Positions 2,478 to 60,140 of a DNA stretch of 64,000 nucleotides are shown here, one piece after another. Within the stretch, counting starts at the first letter, position 1; every line of letters starts with the position of its first letter. A program made the translations under genes and the position numbers. The notes beneath the pieces were generated by a model, which saw nothing but the letters and a program-made list of their open reading frames with translations, was not told the DNA's origin and ran no database searches. Origin of the DNA: Zygnema circumcarinatum SAG 698-1b (lineage: Eukaryota > Plantae > Zygnematophyceae); assembly GCA_037447605.1 (NCBI GenBank), contig CM074815.1, forward strand, positions 620,001 to 684,000, given 5' to 3'.

Positions 2478-4059
2478 ATGGAGTCCCTCGACCTCCTCAC
2501 TTCCGCCTCCTTCCTCGCCCGCGAGGCCGCACGTGTGGGCGAGGCAGCGGAGAACCACAAGGAGAGCTGCCGGCGGCTGGCGGAGGGTCTGAGGGCGCTG
2601 CCCCCCCTCCTGGACGCGGCCAAAGGGGAGGGAGAGAGGGAGAGGGAGGGAGGAGAGGGAGGGGAGGGAGGGGGGGGCGGGCGGGCGGCGGGCAGGGCGG
2701 CGCTGGAGAGGCTGCAGGGGGCGATCAGGAAGGCGAGGGACCTGCTCGGGAGGTGTGGGCAGCCCTGCAGCAAAGTGTATATGGTGAGGGAGGGAGGGAG
2801 AGGAGGGAGGGAGGGAGGGAGGGAGGNNNNNNNNNNGGGGATATGGGGAGGGAGGGGGTGGAGGGAGGGAGGGGAGTATGGGGAGGGAGGGGCGGAGGGA
2901 GAGAGGTGTATAGTGAGGGAGGTCGGATGGAGAGAGGGGAGTATGGTGAGGGAGGGGATAGGAGGGAGAGATGGGGGGAAGAGGCGAGGTGTGGGGAAGG
3001 GGGAGATAGAGAGTGAGAGACTGTGGGAGAGAATAACAGATATGGGTTAGAAAGGAAGGTGGATGGACAGAGAGGGCCTTGATCTCCACAGAGAGTGAAT
3101 GGGAGACGTGGAGAGAGAGAGGGGGACAGAGACAGGGACCGTTGAGGGAGTGAGACTTTGCGTGTGCTTGAGAGAGAAGACACAGCAAGAGCGAGAGACG
3201 GAGATAAGGGAAGGCAGGGAGAGAGGCTAGAGAGCGAGTGAGTGAAAGAATGAATGAGACCTAGAGAGAGAAGGGAGAGATAGAGAGAGGGAGAAAGAGA
3301 GAGAGAGAGAGCCAGGGAGGGAGACGTTGAGGGTGAGGGGTCATGTCTTGAGTCAAACTACAGACTTCCGATGGGTTCAGGCAATGCCTATTTCTGTAAA
3401 TCGTGTTCATTCTGAAAAATCAAAAGGAAGTTTGGGTTGTTGGGGATGCAAAAGGGAGTACCGTAAACTGAAAACAAAGTGGCAGTTCTGCTTTAGACTG
3501 AAAATGGAGCTGCAGGCTCTGAACGAATGGGAAGCTGACAGCTGTCCCTCGTGGTTTCCGCAGGCGGTCCGTGCAGTGATAGTTGTGTCTCAGTTTCAGG
3601 AAGTCACAACGGAACTGTTACGGTGCATATGTGCTCTTCCCCTTGTGTGCGTTAAAGCTTCTGACAGTATTCGTTCGCAGGTGAGGGGGGGACTCTGCCC
3701 TTTGCCAAATGTATGGGTCTAAGTTTGAAGTTTTTTTCTTTCTGAATGTTTCCTTTGGGAATGCACCCACTTTGTTTTTATTGTTTTGATTCAGTTCTGT
3801 TTGTTTCGCTTTTAATATTTTCAGATGCAGCGTGTAATGCATGATGCTGGCATGCAGGGGTTGGTTCTCTTTGTGCCCCTCCCTTCGTCTCCTTCTCCCT
3901 CTTCTTCTGCTTCTCTCATCCTCCCTCTCTCTCCCGCCACCTTCTGCCTCTTGCTCTCTCGCCCTTCTTCTCCTCTCCTCCCTTTTACTCGCCTCCCCCT
4001 CCCCCTTCTCTCCTTCCTCCTCTCTCTCCCTCTCCTCCTCTCTCTCCTCTCTCCTCTCT

Positions 4060-4097
<38 letters not shown>

Positions 4098-7003
4098 TTT
4101 TTGCCATTTCCTTTACTCCTTCCATCCTCTGCCTGTCTGCAGGTGGCCCGTCTAAGTGCAGATTTCCGTCTGCTCCGTTACTCCGTTGATTCCCGCACAA
4201 AGCGAATTGCCAGCGAACTGGAACTGCTCAACATGGAACATAGAAAGGGGGTGAAATGCAACCAAGATGTGGTTTCAAAACTAGCATCCCAATTGGGCAT
4301 TCTCTCGGACGAAGTCTTCAAAGGCGAAATTTCGACCTTAGAAAGGGCAAGAAACTCAGCTTCAGCGGAAAACAAGCTTGCAGAAGCAGACTATCTCTCA
4401 CAGATCATATCTCTCTTACTATCTCTCGAACCGGAGCTTACTTATAATGGACTACTTGCCAAAAAGGAGCTGAAAAAGAAGATTCCAAAAGAGTATTGCT
4501 GCCCTCTCTCTCTGGAGATAATGGGTGATCCGGTGATTACTTCCACAGGCCAAACCTTTGAAAGAGCTTTTATAGAAAAGTGGATGAAGCAGGGAAGCCG
4601 AATTTGTCCTATTACTAAGCAGAGATTGGAGCACACCTCTCTTATTCCGAATTCCGGACTCAAATCTTCAATCACAAACTGGTGTGTGAGTAACGGAATT
4701 TCGATCCCACAAGCTCGGAAACTTCCAGAAAATGCATACATTAAGGGTCCGGGAATTGTCCGGTTTATGCTAATTCCTCAGGCACAGTTTAGCATTGACA
4801 ATGGGGGTAAGAATCGGTACCCAAATGGAGTAAATGGGGTAGATGGGAGTAATGGAGATATGAGCAGAAAATCGAGCATGGTAAAGGGAGCTTCTCGGAG
4901 AACGGTGAGGGCTAAACAGGGGGTTCGATTTGACTCTAAATTAGACAAAATTGACTTAAGGGAGGAAGCAGAAGAGGAGATGAAAATGGTGGAAGATTCG
5001 GAATCGAATTCAGTAAAAAAGTCGGAGTCTCCATGTGTTGTGTTGGACGGAAACGGAGAAGCGAGAAACGGAAAGGAGGGGTCTCTGGGCGAGCATGGAA
5101 ACGTCAGTTTTGTGTCCAGTTTCGTTCCAGAAACTGGGTTTTCCGTTTCATCTAACGGAGGGTCGGAAAACGGAGACAAAGATGGAGGAGATTTCAGCTT
5201 TCCTGCAAGTATAAGTGGAGATAGTTCAAGTCCCGAAACTTCCGGAGAACATGAATTCAGTTTTTCGACCGGTTCTCAGTCTCCAGATTCTTCCACCTTT
5301 TCTTTTACTTCAAGTGATAACATCAACAACAATAGTGGTAATAATACTAACAATGGAAATAACAACAACGGAACCAAGGCTGATTGGTTCAACGGATTCA
5401 AACTCAGAGATCCAATTTCCAAAACGGGAGAGAAGAGCGGAGAGAGAGAGAGAGGAGAGGAGAGTGGTAGTGGTAGAAGTGGTAGTAGAGAAAGGAGAGA
5501 AGTGGAGGGATTGGCAGAGGGGGTGAGAGAAGCCATGGCTCCCCTCGGACACTCGATAAAGTCAACCGAGTCTCCCGATTCTAGTAACTCAGGAAGACGG
5601 CGTCCGTTAACTTTACCGAGGAGGGACCCTGCAGCTTTAGAATATGGAAATTTTAGCCCTTCTTCAACGGCAGCTTCATCTCCAAGAAGTCCAGGAATGC
5701 GATTCATGGGAAGTCCAAGCCCCTTTTTCTTTGAAGGGGACCAAAATTCGGTTAATTTTAAGGGTTTATCTGATCGCCAATTGGCATCTCCCAAAGGTCC
5801 ACTTGAAAGGACTTCTTCTTCTTCATCTTCGATCGATGAAGACTTTAAAAAAGCTCTATTGGAAACTCCGAGAAGATCAAGTAGTAGTGGGACTCTTCTA
5901 GAAGTTTCCACTCCCTATTCTTCCTCTCCCGCTCGTGATCGCTCTCCCTCTCCATCTCCGTCTCCTTCATCTGCTCCCTTTCGTTCCTCTCCCTCTCCCT
6001 CTCCTTCTCCTTCGTCTACCTCTCCCTCTCCTTCACCTCATCCCTCTTGTTCCTCTACCTCTCTTTTCCCTTCTTCTCCCACTCCCTCCCCTTCTTCTGT
6101 GCTTTCTCCTCCTCCCTCTCCTCCCTCTCCTCCCACTCCTCCCTCTCCTACCTCTCCGCTGGATATGGAGGATGTGAGGCAAACTGTGAATCACTTAATT
6201 TCGGGAACGAGCGGTGAGAAGAGAAATGCAGCCCTTATCGTTCGAGAAAAAACCAAGTTGTCGGAGGAATATCGGAAAGCTTTTGGGGAAAACGGAGCCA
6301 TTAAACCCTTAATAGACATGTTGGTGGGTCCGAGGGGTTCAGAGCTTGTTCAAAGTGCAGTTTTTGCCCTTCTAAACCTCTCAATTTTCGACAGAAACAA
6401 GCCAGAAATCGTGACTAACGGAGCTATACCCCTCCTAGTAAGCCTCATGAAAACTGGAAACGAGATATGCAGGGAAGGAGCAGCCGGAACGATATTCAGT
6501 TTGTCAGTTTTGGATGAAAGTAAAGTGAGTATTGGGAGCACTCCGGGAGCAATTCCCCTCCTTATCGATGTGCTGGTTATGGGTACAAAGAGGGCAAAGC
6601 AGGACAGTGTTTTGGCCCTATATAACCTCTCCCTCATGCGATGCAACAAGCTACCCATAGTTCAAGCAGGAGCAATAAAACCCCTCGTTTACATATCCCG
6701 AAAGGGGCCCTCCGTTTTTGGGGTTCACATGGTTGAAAAATCCGTTGCAACGCTGTCGAATTTGTCGACTACAACGGAGGGAAGGAACGGCATTGTGGCT
6801 GCGAAGGGGATCCCCGTTCTATGCTCCGTTGTGGAGGACGGAGGCGAGAAGGCGAAGGAGGGGGCCGCCGCGTGTCTGTTGCGGCTGTGCGTGGGGAGTT
6901 TGGCGCACAAGGCACTCATATGGAACGAGGATGTCATCGCACCACTCATGATGTTGGCGCACAGCGGAACACCAAGGGCAAAGGTCAAGGTGAGGGCTTT
7001 CTC

Positions 7004-7057
<54 letters not shown>

Positions 7058-7314
7058 GCGCTAGTTTCTGTCCCTTGCTGCCTATCGTCCCTCCCGCCCG
7101 TCCCGTTCCTCGGCCTCCGTTTCTCCTCCTCCCCATTTCTTCTATCTATTGNNNNNNNNNNCCTCCCCTTCCCCTTCCCCACCAGTTGGAGCTGACAGAG
7201 GTGGAGGTGTGTTCGCAGGCGAAGGGTCTGTTGGCGGAATTCAACGCCTTCTCCTCAGCGGAGCACGCGAAGCCCCCCCAAGAGCAGCGGGAGAGTCTGA
7301 ATTCTTTATTTTGA
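2478..7314 (+). CDS. Plant U-box/armadillo-repeat E3 ubiquitin ligase (UND + U-box + long linker + ARM), 4 exons
   Basis: Exons ~2478-2783, 3564-3680, 4143-6989 and ~7219-7314, all GT-AG. U-box IPKEYCCPLSLEIMGDPVITSTGQTFERAFIEKWMKQGSRICPIT. ARM repeats include ENGAIKPLIDML, NGAIPLLVSLMKTG, CREGAAGTIFSLS and AKQDSVLALYNLS. Confidence 0.93.
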
Positions 7315-31887: not shown

Positions 31888-32016
31888 ACGTGGACGAATG
31901 GGGTATCTCTTCCAGCCACGTGGACGAGAGGGGTATCCCTCTCAGCCACATGGACGAATGGGAGTATAACTTTAAACCACGTGGACGAATGGGTATCCCG
32001 TCCAGCCACGTGGACG
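31888..32016. repeat. 30-bp minisatellite (~4.3 copies) with a CCACGTGGAC G-box core in the RH17/DGK divergent intergenic region
   Basis: Units of consensus acgtggacgaatggggtatccc-tccagcc start at 31888, 31918, 31948, 31979 and 32008. Confidence 0.85.
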
Positions 32017-46025: not shown

Positions 46026-51871
<5,846 letters not shown>

Positions 51872-54110: not shown

Positions 54111-55338
54111 GGCAGTCAGAGAGGCCGACACGTGGCGCGGACGCGCAGGGGAGGGAGATATGGGCAAAGGAGAGGTGGTGTACGGACGAGGACTAGGTAG
54201 ACACGTGGCGGGCCCCCATTGGCTGCCGGACGACCGGGGTTTGGGACAGTGGCCGATTCTCTCAACATCTCGATACGTTACGATACGATACGATACTGTA
54301 TCGCAATGTCGCTGAGTATATCGTGTATCTTTTATATCGTGTGTATCGGCAGTGGCGGATGTTTTCAATGCAATGCCATGCCATGTCATGCCATGCAATG
54401 CCATGCAAGCCGTGCCTGCCTGCCTTCCGAGGACGGGCGGGCCGCGGCAAAGCGAAGAAGACACGCTGAGGCGCAGTTGTGGCCGGCTCCACGGCTCCAT
54501 GAATTTGAAAGGGAGTTCGTGCTTGTTGTTGACAATTTGAGCCCGGTATCTCCCACTACTCTCACTCTCTGACATGCTTGCAAGTCTGAATCAAGGCAAC
54601 CCTCAAGTGCACACACTGAAAAGCAGATGATTCAAACAAGCAAAACACGGAAAGAGAATAAGTGAGGAGAAAGCACTATAACTAACAGATTTTTCCTGAA
54701 ACACGCTACGTTATGTGCCCTATCTTTTTCTCTCAGTTTTAATTCCCGCTATTTCCAACTGCCGCGGACTCCACTTTTGTCGCGTCTCGTTTCGTCACGT
54801 CACGGTCCCAAACATACTTGCCACGTCATATGTTGCCGCGACCAAAAATGTCGCTCCACGTGTTGCGCCCTTATACCTTGTAGACGCGCGCGCTTCGTAC
54901 ATTTCAAATCACCATCCGTACATTCGTACGAAAAAAGGTCTGTATCTATTCTGAAAAAGTATGAAACAGCATTTTTCGCCAAAAAAAACCTTTTTTTGCT
55001 GCCCGGCGAAAACTTACACTATATTCAGAAAAAGGACACTGTAAATAGTCGCCCCCTTTCCAATAATACGGATGTTTGTCCGTACAGTCCATTCGGTAGT
55101 GAACTCGTAAACTGCTAAGTTGAGTCCCTCCCTGAACGGCCCTTCCGGTCCCCCGTGACGTCATGGCTTCCCACTCCGGCGCCATGGGACCATAGCGGCT
55201 GCCACGCGGCGCCCTGTGAGGGCCTCAGAGCGAACGACGAAACCTTAGAAACCCTTAAAACCCTATAAATCCTGAAAACCCCGAGAGCCCTGAAAACCCC
55301 GGAAACCTTAAAAACACTGAGACGGCAGGACAGGCGCC

Positions 55339-55650
55339 ATGGCGGCCAAGCTCAGTGTCGTCCACGTGACCGTATTATTCTTGCTGCTGAGCACGCTGGC
55401 GGTGGGGGGTGCCACGTGGCAGCAGCTCCGTGGAGACGCGGCGGCGGGCGGGCGAGCGCTTCTTTCGGCGAAAGCGCCGCCGGGATGGGTCTCGTGCAAG
55501 AACGGACTGCCCAAGAAGAGCCGTGAGACCCCCTGTGGACCCCTCCGTGGTGCAAAGGGGCGGGCCTTAATTTGACAAACTGAGAGGCAGTTTTTGTATG
55601 ATTATGAAAGAGGAACGGCATCTCATTCGACTTCCTTTCTGTTCTTTCCC

Positions 55651-55704
<54 letters not shown>

Positions 55705-56192
55705 CTATCTCTCTCTCTCGCCCTCTCTCTCTCTCCCCCCCTCTCTCCATCCGCTCCCCTATCTCTCCTCTCTCTCTCTCTCTCTCTTTTTCCCCCCACT
55801 ATCTCTTTCCCCCTCTTTCTCACTCTGCGCCCCCCTCTCTCCTCCCCCTCTCTCCCCCTCTCTCGCTCCCCCCCCTCACTCTCCGCCCCCCTCTCTCCCC
55901 CTTTCCCCCCTCTCACGCTCCGCCCCACTCTCCCCCCCTCTCTCGCTCCCTCCCCCTCACTCTCCACCCCCGTCTCTCCCCCTCTCTTGCTCCCCACCCC
56001 CCCCTCACTCTCCGCCTTCCTCTCTCCCCCCCCCCCACCCACTCTCTCTCTGTCTCTCTGTTTCTCCCTCTCGTTTTCCTCTCCTTCCCCGTCCTCCTCG
56101 CAGCGTGCAAGAAGTCGGAGAGGATGTGCTGCGGGCGGGTCGGCGTGGTCCTGTGCGTCCCAAAGAGCGTTTCGTGCGATGGAATCGATTAG
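55339..56192 (+). CDS. Small secreted cysteine-rich peptide precursor CRP-1 (90 aa; 6-Cys C-C-CC-C-C)
   Basis: Exon 1 55339-55522 (donor gtgaga, phase 1) and exon 2 56104-56192 (acceptor ctcgcag) give MAAKLSVVHVTVLFLLLSTLAVGG-ATWQQLRGDAAAGGRALL-SAKAPPGWVSCKNGLPKKSPCKKSERMCCGRVGVVLCVPKSVSCDGID*. Confidence 0.85.
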
Positions 56193-57052
56193 TTCGGCCG
56201 ACCGCAAACATGTCAACTTCAAACTTCAAAGCGTTTTAGGGTTTGGGTTGTTCATGGTTTTAAGTATCTTGGGTTTAAGGATTTAAGCATCTTGGGTTTA
56301 AGGGTTATGGCCTTTTGGGAGGTTATTTTCGAAGTTGTTGTGAAGGATCAAAACGGGGTTGAGTTGAGGACGTTCTCGGCTCTCAAAGACGAGTTATTCT
56401 TGTTATTATCACGTTCTTCAATTACAACAGTTTCTTTCTTTCCATATTTTAAGGATTGCACATTGTGTTGGGTCCGAATGAATGCGTGGTTGAGAGTGAT
56501 CGTGGTTCAAAACACTCATTTAAAAAAAAAAATTGAAAAAAGGGTGGGCGTTGGGGTCCGGATGGAATGGAAACGTAGGAAAAAAAAAAAAAAATGAATT
56601 TTCGTCCGTTTCGTTTGCTCTTGCCTCAGTGCTGTGCGTGTCCGTAAATTCGTAAAATGGGCCCTCCGGATTTCAGAATTTGCAAGAAATCAGAAACTCG
56701 TTAGAGTTTTCGCCTCCGCGGACATTCCGGGGGGGGCTGTTTTATCAGCAGCGTCTGAAGTTCGGCATCCTACTCGAGTTTTTCCGAATTTCAGAAATTC
56801 GGTACAAATGTTTGGGAACGTTTCAGCGTCCTCATTTATCCGAACAACCTCAACTTTAATAGGCCTAATTGGGCTAAAAGTGATGAGACTTCACCAAGAC
56901 CGTACCTCCAATGTTCCCTCTCTCCCTCTCTCTCTCTCTCCCTCCCTCCCTTTCTCTATCTCGTGAATTGACTATGCATGTGAGAAGATATGAAACATAT
57001 ACGTCCGATGGCCTCGCCATCGTAGATCAATCGGAGCATTCAAGTCAAATCT

Positions 57053-57248
57053 CATAGTGCGACACATGTACCACAGTGCGACATGCATGCGACGCCGCGC
57101 ATGTGATGCTAGGCGCCTCAAATAGTCAAATGTGCAGCGTTTTTGGCGACTCAATTTTGTTTGCGACCCATTTATGAGCGTCGCACTATGCGAAATACGT
57201 CGCACTATGGGATAATTCGTCGCACTATGGATAATGCGTCTCACTATG
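57053..57248. repeat. Head-to-head arrays of an 11-12-bp motif (GTCGCACTATG) with ~19-bp period; possible MITE/foldback remnant
   Basis: Reverse copies CATAGTGCGAC 57053-57063 and CACAGTGCGAC 57072-57082. Forward copies CGTCGCACTATG at 57179, 57198 and 57218, and a variant at 57237. Confidence 0.7.
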
Positions 57249-58016
57249 TGCTTTCCGCATATTTGAACAGTTCATTCCCGAACTCCACCCGACCGAAATC
57301 CAAATTCTTCTTTTTCTTTCAAATTCCGCGAATTGTGAATACGGAATTTGGTACTGAATTTTCAATACCTAATGCGCCACCGACGGCGTGGGACCCGCCG
57401 GGTTTTCCGGACACAACGGCTATAAGCTTTCAGGCTTCTACCGCACGACTGTCCGTACAACTGGCAGGAGCCGCGCCAAGCTGTCAATGTACGAACAGTA
57501 CGAACCATACGGAACTGAACGCCCTTGCTCTATGCTGCTTTCCCTGCTGACTAAACTGTGATTAACTGTATAGTCAGAGTCCCCTCCCTCGAAAATAACG
57601 CAGTCATGGTCAAATATGATGGCCACGACTAACCAGGAAAGATTTGTGGTCGGCGTGATGTACGAACACTTGTACGAACTGCTGACATGTCACGACCCGG
57701 CAATTATTACTGCTGCCAGAAGCTTGCCACGTGTCACTCCCTTGCTGACGAGGACCGAATCGGATCCTGCCGCTCGATGGTCGGCAAACCTCCACCGCCG
57801 TCAGCAGAGGCGACAAGGCGAGGGCGCACCACGTGGCACGTGCAGATTAACGCAGGACCAAATGGACAAGTATTTTCTGTCCTATGCGTAAGAAAATCCT
57901 TGACCATTCGTACGGTCACCTTTCGTACGGTCGGCCGGTCCCTCCCTGCTTCGTCCGCGCCCGCCACAAAGCGACGCGCGTTGGAGCGCTCCGAGGAGTC
58001 CCCGTAAGCCGCAGCC

Positions 58017-58585
58017 ATGGCCGCCCCACCGAACGCGCGCCACGTGGCAGCCCTCGCGCTCGTCTTCCTCGTCCTCGTCGCGGCGGCGCTGAACGTAGAG
58101 GCCGCCACGTGGCAGCTCCGCGGCGCGGGCGGCCAATTGGAGGGCCCGGAGGAGAGCCACGTGGCAGCGCACGGGCGAGCGCTGCTGACCGTGAAAAAGC
58201 CGCCGAAGGTGAAATGCGTGAAGGGGGGACCGCCAAAAAAAAATAAGCGTAAGACCCCATTTGCAACCCCATCTCAAGCGCAGGCGGTTTTAGTTCTTCA
58301 GGGGTTTTTTTTTTCCAGCTTTTTTTGAAATCAGAAACTTGGTTTTAGGAGGTTTTTGAAACCCGCGAGCTCCTTTCTGCTCCTCCGACGCTTCTTCTGA
58401 AAGCGCCGCGGATTGCCGAAGTTTTGCAGGCTCTAACTCTTTTTTTTTTTTTTTGCATTTGAATTTGCATTTGCGGTGTGCCCGCAGTGTGCCCCGACCC
58501 GAAGTACCCGCGAGTGTGTTGTGACAGCGCGGGCTACGTCGTATGCGTGGCCAAAGGCGTCATGTGCCTCAAGCCGCCCGCGTGA
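58017..58585 (+). CDS. Small secreted cysteine-rich peptide precursor CRP-2 (109 aa; paralog of CRP-1)
   Basis: Exon 1 58017-58248 (donor gtaaga, phase 1) and exon 2 58488-58585 (acceptor cccgcag) give MAAPPNARHVAALALVFLVLVAAALNVEA-ATWQLRGAGGQLEGPEESHVAAHGRALL-TVKKPPKVKCVKGGPPKKNKLCPDPKYPRVCCDSAGYVVCVAKGVMCLKPPA*. Confidence 0.87.
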
Positions 58586-60140
58586 GGGAGAGGGAGAGGG
58601 AGAGGGAGGGAGAGGGAGAGGGAGAGGGAGAGGGAGGGAGAGGGAGAGGGAGAGGGACAGGGAGGGAGAGGGTGAGGGAGCGGGTGAGGGAACAGGCGCC
58701 TTTCGTGTTTCCAGGGAATTGTGTTGAGATCCGTACAATCGGACATAGAGCCGTACGAAACCTTTGTACGGAAGTAATGTACGAAACTGTACGAATGGAG
58801 TCACACGTGTTGAGTTTAGGAAGTGATGTGAATCCCTAGACCCTTTGATCGAATGGTTCATGTTGTTCATCATGTTATGCTTTTGGCGGCGAGGTTTTAG
58901 GAAGGACAAGTATAAGACTACTGTTTTCTGTGTCTTTGTCAACCGGAGCTTTGAGGGAAAGCATAGAATGCTTGTGCTCCTGTTCAACTTTGGAATAAAG
59001 CTTTTGGGGATAAGTGTGTTGTGCACTGAATGATTAAGATTGCTGAAAATGTCTATGAGAGGAAAATCTTCTAGTAGATGAAATAGAAGAAACTGAGAGA
59101 GAAGTAAGGCCCAGTTTTACATTCTGAAGGCTCGCTTTGGACACATGGGGTTTGCATTAATGAATGGACACGCGGTGCATCGCCTCGTGTGTTTGATGTC
59201 CAGCTCTGTCCCTCCATGCGCCTGCCCGTGCATACATACATTCATGCATGCATGCATGCATGATGGCATGGAATGGCATGGCATGCATGCTCGCGGCGTG
59301 GCATGGCTTTGTCGCCCCAAAATGGAAAGGAGCAAAGATGGATGGATGGATGGTGGATGCATGCAGCCCTCTTTCAAAGAAATGTTTATTCAAATATGGC
59401 CACGGGTTTGCTTGGCTTCGCGTGCGCTGGTTGACTAGAATTGACCAGCTAATGACCCGTTTGCAAGCCCTGAACATCGGAAACCACTCGCCGATGGCCA
59501 ATGCCCACCACGCGTCCCTTAGGGTTTGACCGCCTTGGACCAGTACAAATGCAGAATCCGTATCGTACGGTAATCACTCCGATTCCGCAGCTGTGGCCTG
59601 TACGGAGACGCATTTCCAAGAGCTGCCGGGGTTGGGGGCACAGCGGCGGACTCTGGCAAGATGACCAGTACGGCATATTTTGTTTCCAGGCTGTTGACAT
59701 CAGTACTGATGTACGGCTAAGATTCGCATGATTGGAGCTTGTCGGTAGGACGTACGGCAAAGTACGGATTATTAGTGATACAGTACTGTAAAACCGAGCA
59801 GGCTGAGAATTTTTTCTGAAATTCTCAATCTTACTGAAAATAGGGTCGAACTTTGATTGGAGCAAGCACATGTCTTGTCGTTTTGTACTACAGTACATGT
59901 CACTTTCTGTACGGGCTTTCCACAAAATCAGCAGTCATCTGTACAATAACTGTACAAAAACGACAAAACCCCAATCATTGCTTTTCTAGAGTCGTACGGA
60001 CAGCACACAACCTTAAGTCCGGTCGGAGCGACCGCGACCGACGGTTACTGCCGCAGCCGGAAACTCGGCACGTGGCGAGCGGCTATTGGGTTTCAGGAGC
60101 TTCACCGACAGACCAGATCCGCTACCGTTATTATTCGATA

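Follow-up and report, generated by a model that had tools for sequence, protein, structure and literature searches.

A predicted tandem gene pair for secreted cationic six-cysteine peptides in the streptophyte alga Zygnema circumcarinatum

The 64-kb window of Zygnema circumcarinatum DNA analysed here contains a two-exon reading on the forward strand, CRP-2 (58017-58585), that in all probability represents a genuine gene in the nucleus of this streptophyte (plant-lineage) alga. It is predicted to encode a secreted precursor that would release a small, strongly cationic peptide with six cysteines. Together with a tandem paralog, CRP-1, it forms an unannotated orphan gene pair whose kind is ordinary and whose sequence is new, and from their sequence and mode of divergence we are highly confident that the two genes are real. 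The claim that CRP-2 is a diverged hevein does not hold up, as judged from its sequence, in the defining tests that were run. All coordinates below refer to the forward strand of the window.

Gene model, tandem paralog and search for relatives

CRP-2 exon 1 (58017-58248) begins with an ATG at 58017 in the plant-like context gccgcagccATGgcc (gccATGgc), and an in-frame TAA lies four codons 5' of it. The phase 1 intron (58249-58487; 239 nt, GC 0.45) has canonical GT..AG borders. It runs from the donor agc/GTAAGA through a poly-T tract to a CGCAG end, the acceptor being CCCGCAG/tg at 58487/58488, and splits a Leu codon (C/TG). Exon 2 (58488-58585) supplies Cys II-VI with the spacing C-x8-CC-x7-C-x6-C, a 5-aa tail and a TGA stop at 58583-58585. 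An exon-by-exon count gives 109 codons, divided into a leader of 29, a pro-region of 28 and a mature part of 52.

A tblastn search of both exon translations against the window found one paralog, CRP-1, in tandem 2.7 kb upstream. Its exon 1 (55339-55522) encodes a signal peptide, an 18-aa pro-region running from ATWQ to GRALL, and Cys I, and is 51% identical to exon 1 of CRP-2. A phase 1 intron filled with CT repeats (55523-56103) is followed by exon 2 (56104-56192), which carries Cys II-VI (C-x6-CC-x7-C-x6-C) and a TAG stop and is 43% identical to its CRP-2 counterpart. The two introns interrupt a homologous codon, both in phase 1. All six cysteines align between the products, as do M-A-A, H-V, A-T-W-Q, G-R-A-L-L, P-P and P-K-K. 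A regular expression for the five cysteines of exon 2 gave three matches when the window was translated in six frames, CRP-2 and CRP-1 accounting for two of these, and gave 0-1 in shuffled sequences.

At the DNA level, blastn of the two loci gave an alignment over part of exon 1 (65% identity); in the promoters, introns and 3' flanks it found nothing beyond CT/GA microsatellites and a handful of weak, short matches. Third-position GC is 0.80-0.84 in all four exons, with a second-position GC of about 0.5. Between the paralogs synonymous differences are saturated (pS 0.65), pN is 0.37 and dN/dS is about 0.34, this conservation evidence being one paralog pair. CRP-2 is taken to be a real gene on the strength of DNA similarity that is restricted to the coding parts, a GC3 of 0.80-0.84 and a dN/dS of about 0.34. 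CRP-1 and CRP-2 are an old tandem pair.

The two loci might instead be chance or decaying pairs of open reading frames in GC-rich, repeat-rich DNA shaped by an iterated G-box palindrome. Such an origin would suit the finding of no transcript, annotation or homologue in the collections searched, the three palindrome copies within exon 1 of CRP-2, and the microsatellites that adjoin the CRP-2 stop and fill the CRP-1 intron. It is nevertheless very unlikely. In both copies the frames are open, the splice sites are canonical and agree in codon and phase, and the six cysteines are kept; third-position GC periodicity is strong and pN lies well below pS; and the flanks and introns have no more in common than CT/GA repeats and weak matches of short length.

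Several collections were searched for relatives. Pfam gave nothing for the four exon pieces of the pair except Ldl_recept_a at E 0.08, which was rejected as chance. A word search found no relatives of CRP-2 exon 1, and a HMMER profile of the two exon 1 sequences returned only 2 hits among 1.84 billion representatives. Both were rejected as relatives, since they are translated tandem repeats whose weak repeat matches sum up. Alignments of both exons found no match in the JGI metagenomes, an exact look-up of the unspliced CRP-2 ORF found it not on record, and the ESM Atlas returned a best score of 0.76 and no family for exon 2. A control is provided by a plant-type U-box + ARM (PUB) E3 ligase encoded by a single 1079-aa ORF at 3825-7061. 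This protein is itself not on record, and its best relative in 5.8 billion clusters, a Logan RNA-seq contig, is only 53% identical. The collections therefore lack this organism and its close kin, and the blank searches accordingly say little about whether CRP-2 truly has no kin. Missing relatives would be expected for a fast-evolving gene of 109 codons and are weak evidence that it is a true orphan. Judged by sequence, CRP-2 is a lineage-specific family. Neighbouring ORFs in the window have plant-type architectures (U-box + ARM_PUB, GH17 + X8 and DAG kinase). A Pfam search of six ORFs near CRP-2 yielded no context. A full-text literature search found general reviews only and no account of small cysteine-rich secreted peptides in streptophyte algae. 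If verified, a cationic knottin-type pair would be a data point on the age of plant-style peptide defence or wall-binding peptides.

Parts of the precursor and their proposed route

The predicted signal peptide of CRP-2 (58017-58103; 29 codons) has a basic n-region, a 16-residue hydrophobic core and V-E-A before the predicted cut; by the -3/-1 rule, signal peptidase would cleave after V-E-A. In the AF2 model of exon 1 the leader forms a helix (residues 7-35). No regular structure follows, either in the pro-region or in the Lys/Pro-rich beginning of the mature peptide (pLDDT about 50, and about 50-58 in the exon-1 part of the mature peptide).

The pro-region (58104-58187) comprises 28 codons from ATWQ to GRALL. 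An earlier reading made from the sequence alone (the sequence-only reading) had called it longer and acidic. It is indeed 10 aa longer than the 18-aa pro-region of CRP-1, but it is acidic only locally, at PEES; its 3 E are set against 2 R and 2 H, which leaves a net charge of about -1. The further suggestion that an acidic pro-piece neutralises the cationic peptide is unsupported, because a pro-region at -1 faces a mature peptide at +10. The R-A-L-L at its end fits an RxxL/RxLx subtilase/S1P site. Sites of the RxxL/RxLx type are those of S1P/SBT6.1 and SBT3.5, and RALF23 is cleaved after RRIL (PMC13082318). The pro-region of CRP-2 would thus probably be removed after RALL by an S1P/subtilase-type protease. 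GRALL contains one Arg, whereas the sites of RALF, GLV and PROSCOOP carry RR (listing in PMC13082318).

The mature peptide after RALL is 52 aa long and holds 11 K, 1 R, 2 D, 0 E and 9 Pro, for a net charge of +10. Its six cysteines follow the pattern C-x11-C-x8-CC-x7-C-x6-C (loops 11/8/0/7/6). The exon-1 part (58188-58248) is a 20-aa segment rich in Lys and Pro, followed by the base that opens the interrupted Leu codon. It holds Cys I and 8 of the 11 Lys and is unstructured in the AF2 model. The exon-by-exon count agrees with the coordinates, the mature peptide and the charge (11 K + 1 R against 2 D, about +10) given by the sequence-only reading, and its description of CRP-2 as a strongly cationic secreted 6-Cys paralog with a signal/pro/mature layout is borne out. 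The mature net charge is positive in both paralogs (+10 in CRP-2 and +6 in CRP-1).

From these parts a chain of events can be proposed. An ER signal peptide would direct the CRP-2 product into the secretory pathway. The near-neutral pro-region, with its conserved GRALL end, would be cut by an S1P/subtilase-type protease after RxxL/RxLx, and the freed 52-aa peptide would combine a flexible Lys/Pro-rich N-terminal part with a compact C-terminal core of three disulfides. Outside the cell it would, judging from its charge and class, most likely bind polyanions electrostatically; its targets could be the envelopes of microbes, in which case it would serve in antimicrobial defence, or else the pectic or sulfated wall and mucilage of the alga itself. 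The segment P-K-K-N-K-L presumably fits the XBBXBX polyanion-binding pattern. Taken as a whole, this chain from a pre-pro-peptide to a secreted, processed, cystine-knot polycation that binds polyanions is the account towards which we lean, by a modest degree.

The same layout could belong to a signalling ligand that is perceived by a receptor, bound to pectin, or both, like RALF or EPF of land plants. As in RALF23, an RxxL/RxLx-type site stands directly before a basic, Cys-containing mature peptide of about 50 aa; the site and the cysteine frame are kept between the paralogs while the loops have diverged; and the G-box cluster described below suggests regulated expression. In how they would work, RALF and CRP-2 are alike in being made as pre-pro-peptides with an RxxL-type site that precedes a polycationic, disulfide-bonded mature peptide of about 50 aa. 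RALF has four cysteines and a YISY motif. CRP-2 differs from it in having six cysteines with a CC pair and a single-Arg site, and it gave no Pfam RALF hit, no YISY and no di-basic RRxL site. Pfam and the word and profile searches of exon 1 found no sequence similarity to known ligand families, and most loop positions differ between the paralogs, which is commoner in defence peptides. A ligand role is unlikely on this evidence, and a polyanion-binding polycation is preferred.

The hevein frame and the knottin class

The sequence-only reading had compared CRP-2 with hevein on the basis of the string CC-DSA-GY-VV-C-x6-C, which is present as written. Its hevein-like cysteine register is also correct as a generic frame, since C-C-CC-C-C is common to hevein-like peptides and knottins (PMC5478723, PMC5743680). 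Hevein-like peptides are defined by two features, a cystine-knot core and a site for chitin in their loops 3 and 4, SxΦxΦCGx4Y (PMC5478723). The more specific identification of a hevein/CBM18 core in CRP-2 found no Pfam or PDB match, the chitin motif is absent, and loops 1-3 differ.

That identification amounts to a degenerate but true hevein/CBM18 homologue in which loop 3 has gained two residues and the aromatic triad has been lost in part, and whose remaining Tyr would still serve to bind chitin or some other polysaccharide. Likeness is found in the C-C-CC-C-C frame, in a CC followed by xxxG and an aromatic (Tyr), and in a loop 4 of six residues. The AF2 model of exon 2 alone, which holds five of the six cysteines and was built from a two-sequence alignment, has a pLDDT of 78 and places a beta-hairpin (residues 8-13/16-22) between CC and Cys V. 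The hevein sheet is also located at the CC...C loop.

Against this, hmmscan of the exon pieces against Pfam at E<=10 found no PF00187 in exon 2 of CRP-2 or CRP-1 (Cys I lies in exon 1), and neither phmmer nor a two-paralog profile found a PDB chain similar to exon 2 at E<=10 among all chains. Strict and relaxed regular expressions for SxΦxΦCGx4Y were both absent from CRP-2 and CRP-1. After CC, CRP-2 reads D-S-A-G-Y-V-V-C-V, so that the Ser is one place off the chitin motif and the first aromatic is Ala; Val replaces Gly after Cys V, and Met replaces Tyr before Cys VI. CRP-2 retains one Tyr (GY), which is Val (GV) in CRP-1, and exon 2 of CRP-1 has zero aromatic residues. The loops of CRP-2 (11/8/0/7/6) compare with 8/4/0/5/6 in vaccatide, an 8C hevein-like peptide (sequence in PMC5478723), and only loop 4 agrees; loop 3 is longer by two residues and loops 1 and 2 are longer as well. 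The C-C-CC-C-C frame is, moreover, found in unrelated knottins (PMC5743680). True hevein descent is thus most improbable. By sequence, the resemblance of CRP-2 to hevein is a generic frame plus one G-Y dipeptide, and for this reason CRP-2 is not filed under CBM18.

The frame itself points to a wider class. CXnCXnCCXnCXnC is common to chitin-binding and non-chitin-binding cystine-knot peptides, several of which are cationic and antimicrobial (PMC5743680). Peptides that have the frame and do not bind chitin include Mj-AMPs, PAFP-S, alpha-amylase inhibitors, roseltides and bleogens. Both CRP paralogs are small predicted-secreted peptides with CXnCXnCCXnCXnC, and by this motif CRP-2 fits the broad, motif-defined knottin or non-chitin-binding "6C-HLP" class only. 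From the frame alone, three disulfides in a cystine knot (I-IV, II-V, III-VI) are most likely.

Like Mj-AMP1/2, PAFP-S, bleogen pB1, the roseltides and the cystine-knot alpha-amylase inhibitors (PMC5743680), CRP-2 would be made as a small secreted precursor, for which a pro-domain is optional. It shares with the 6C-HLP class six cysteines, a central CC and variable loops (PMC5743680). Several members of the class are rich in Lys or Arg and are antimicrobial or bind polyanions, and CRP-2 is likewise Lys-rich. It differs in having no detectable sequence similarity to them, longer loops (11/8/0/7/6), a 9-residue Lys/Pro N-terminal tail and a length of 52 aa as against about 30-40. The 6C-HLP peptides are from seed plants, whereas CRP-2 is from an alga. 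Searches and folds of CRP-2 were carried out exon by exon, separately. Neither Foldseek (PDB) nor VIA-align (48,161 chains) matched the exon-2 model to a structure, a result that is uninformative for a fragment of 31 residues.

G-box palindromes, GTAC cores and repeats around the pair

CRP-2 lies in the densest CACGTG cluster of the window, with 6 copies in 450 nt (upstream plus three exonic) where 0.26 are expected (Poisson 3e-7). The upstream G-box elements (57726-57843) are GCCACGTGTCA at 57726-57736 and CCACGTGGCACGTG at 57829-57842, 290 to 175 nt before the CRP-2 ATG. Exon 1 contains three copies of GCCACGTGGCAGC in two reading frames. Copy 1 (58039-58051) is read as R-H-V-A-A in the signal peptide, copy 2 (58104-58116) as A-T-W-Q in the pro-region, and copy 3 (58156-58168), in a frame other than that of copy 2, as S-H-V-A-A, also in the pro-region. 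Copies 1 and 2 have counterparts at the same codons of CRP-1, and copy 3 sits in the pro-region extension found only in CRP-2. Part of the extra length of this pro-region is better read as a by-product of the iterated G-box palindrome than as a selected charge mask.

The palindrome is also widespread beyond the pair. The window has 10 copies of the decamer CCACGTGGCA (0.02 expected) and 14 of CCACGTGG, with G-box copies at 27573, 31231, 31916-32006, 34331, 38948, 45674, 50390, 55410 and 57829-58166. Some lie near 5' ends of open reading frames: 34331 before the DAG-kinase exon, 45674 before the ORF at 46026 and 50390 before the ORF at 50807. A CCAAT-N9-CCACG composite in CRP-2 exon 1 was considered and rejected, because the CCAAT at 58133 is 19 nt from the G-box.

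A still broader picture would have the closest algal relatives of land plants already making lineage-specific, subtilase-processed, polycationic cystine-knot peptides with a receptor, the pectic wall or the mucilage as their binding partner. Such peptides would be a functional forerunner or analogue of RALF-type wall signalling, and their expression would be driven by coding-exon G-box palindromes which also reshaped the pro-peptide. Taken together, all of this is quite unlikely.

A candidate cis-element is a tandem 15-mer, ACCWTTCGTACGGTC x2, with GTAC cores at 57903-57932, 114 to 85 nt before the CRP-2 ATG. GTAC is the core of SBP-domain (SPL/CRR1, copper-response) sites. The window contains 17 copies of the heptamer GTACGAA/TTCGTAC, against a mean of 7.6 after shuffling. 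Of the 17, 12 fall at 54894-58789, around CRP-1 and CRP-2, a segment whose proportional share would be about 1.1. Most are in close pairs, 9-15 nt apart, including the 15-mer of 57903-57932 upstream of CRP-2. This clustering could reflect shared regulation of CRP-1 and CRP-2.

Simple repeats surround both genes. Directly 5' of the CRP-1 ATG are about 8 copies of telomere-like, AAACCCT-type 9/18-mers (55240-55320), within which a CTATAAAT box lies about 70 nt before the ATG, and complementary GGGTTT-type units recur at 56238-56303, just past the CRP-1 stop. The CRP-1 intron holds a 400-nt CT-rich compound microsatellite (55661-56059). In the 3' flank of CRP-2 a (GAGGGA)n microsatellite (58584-58691) begins within the stop codon, and the strongest DNA matches between the CRP-1 and CRP-2 loci are those of the CT-rich intron array and this complementary-type (GAGGGA)n. 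Between the two genes, a 19-nt tandem repeat, CGTCGCACTATGGGATAATA, is present in 3.6 copies at 57179-57248.
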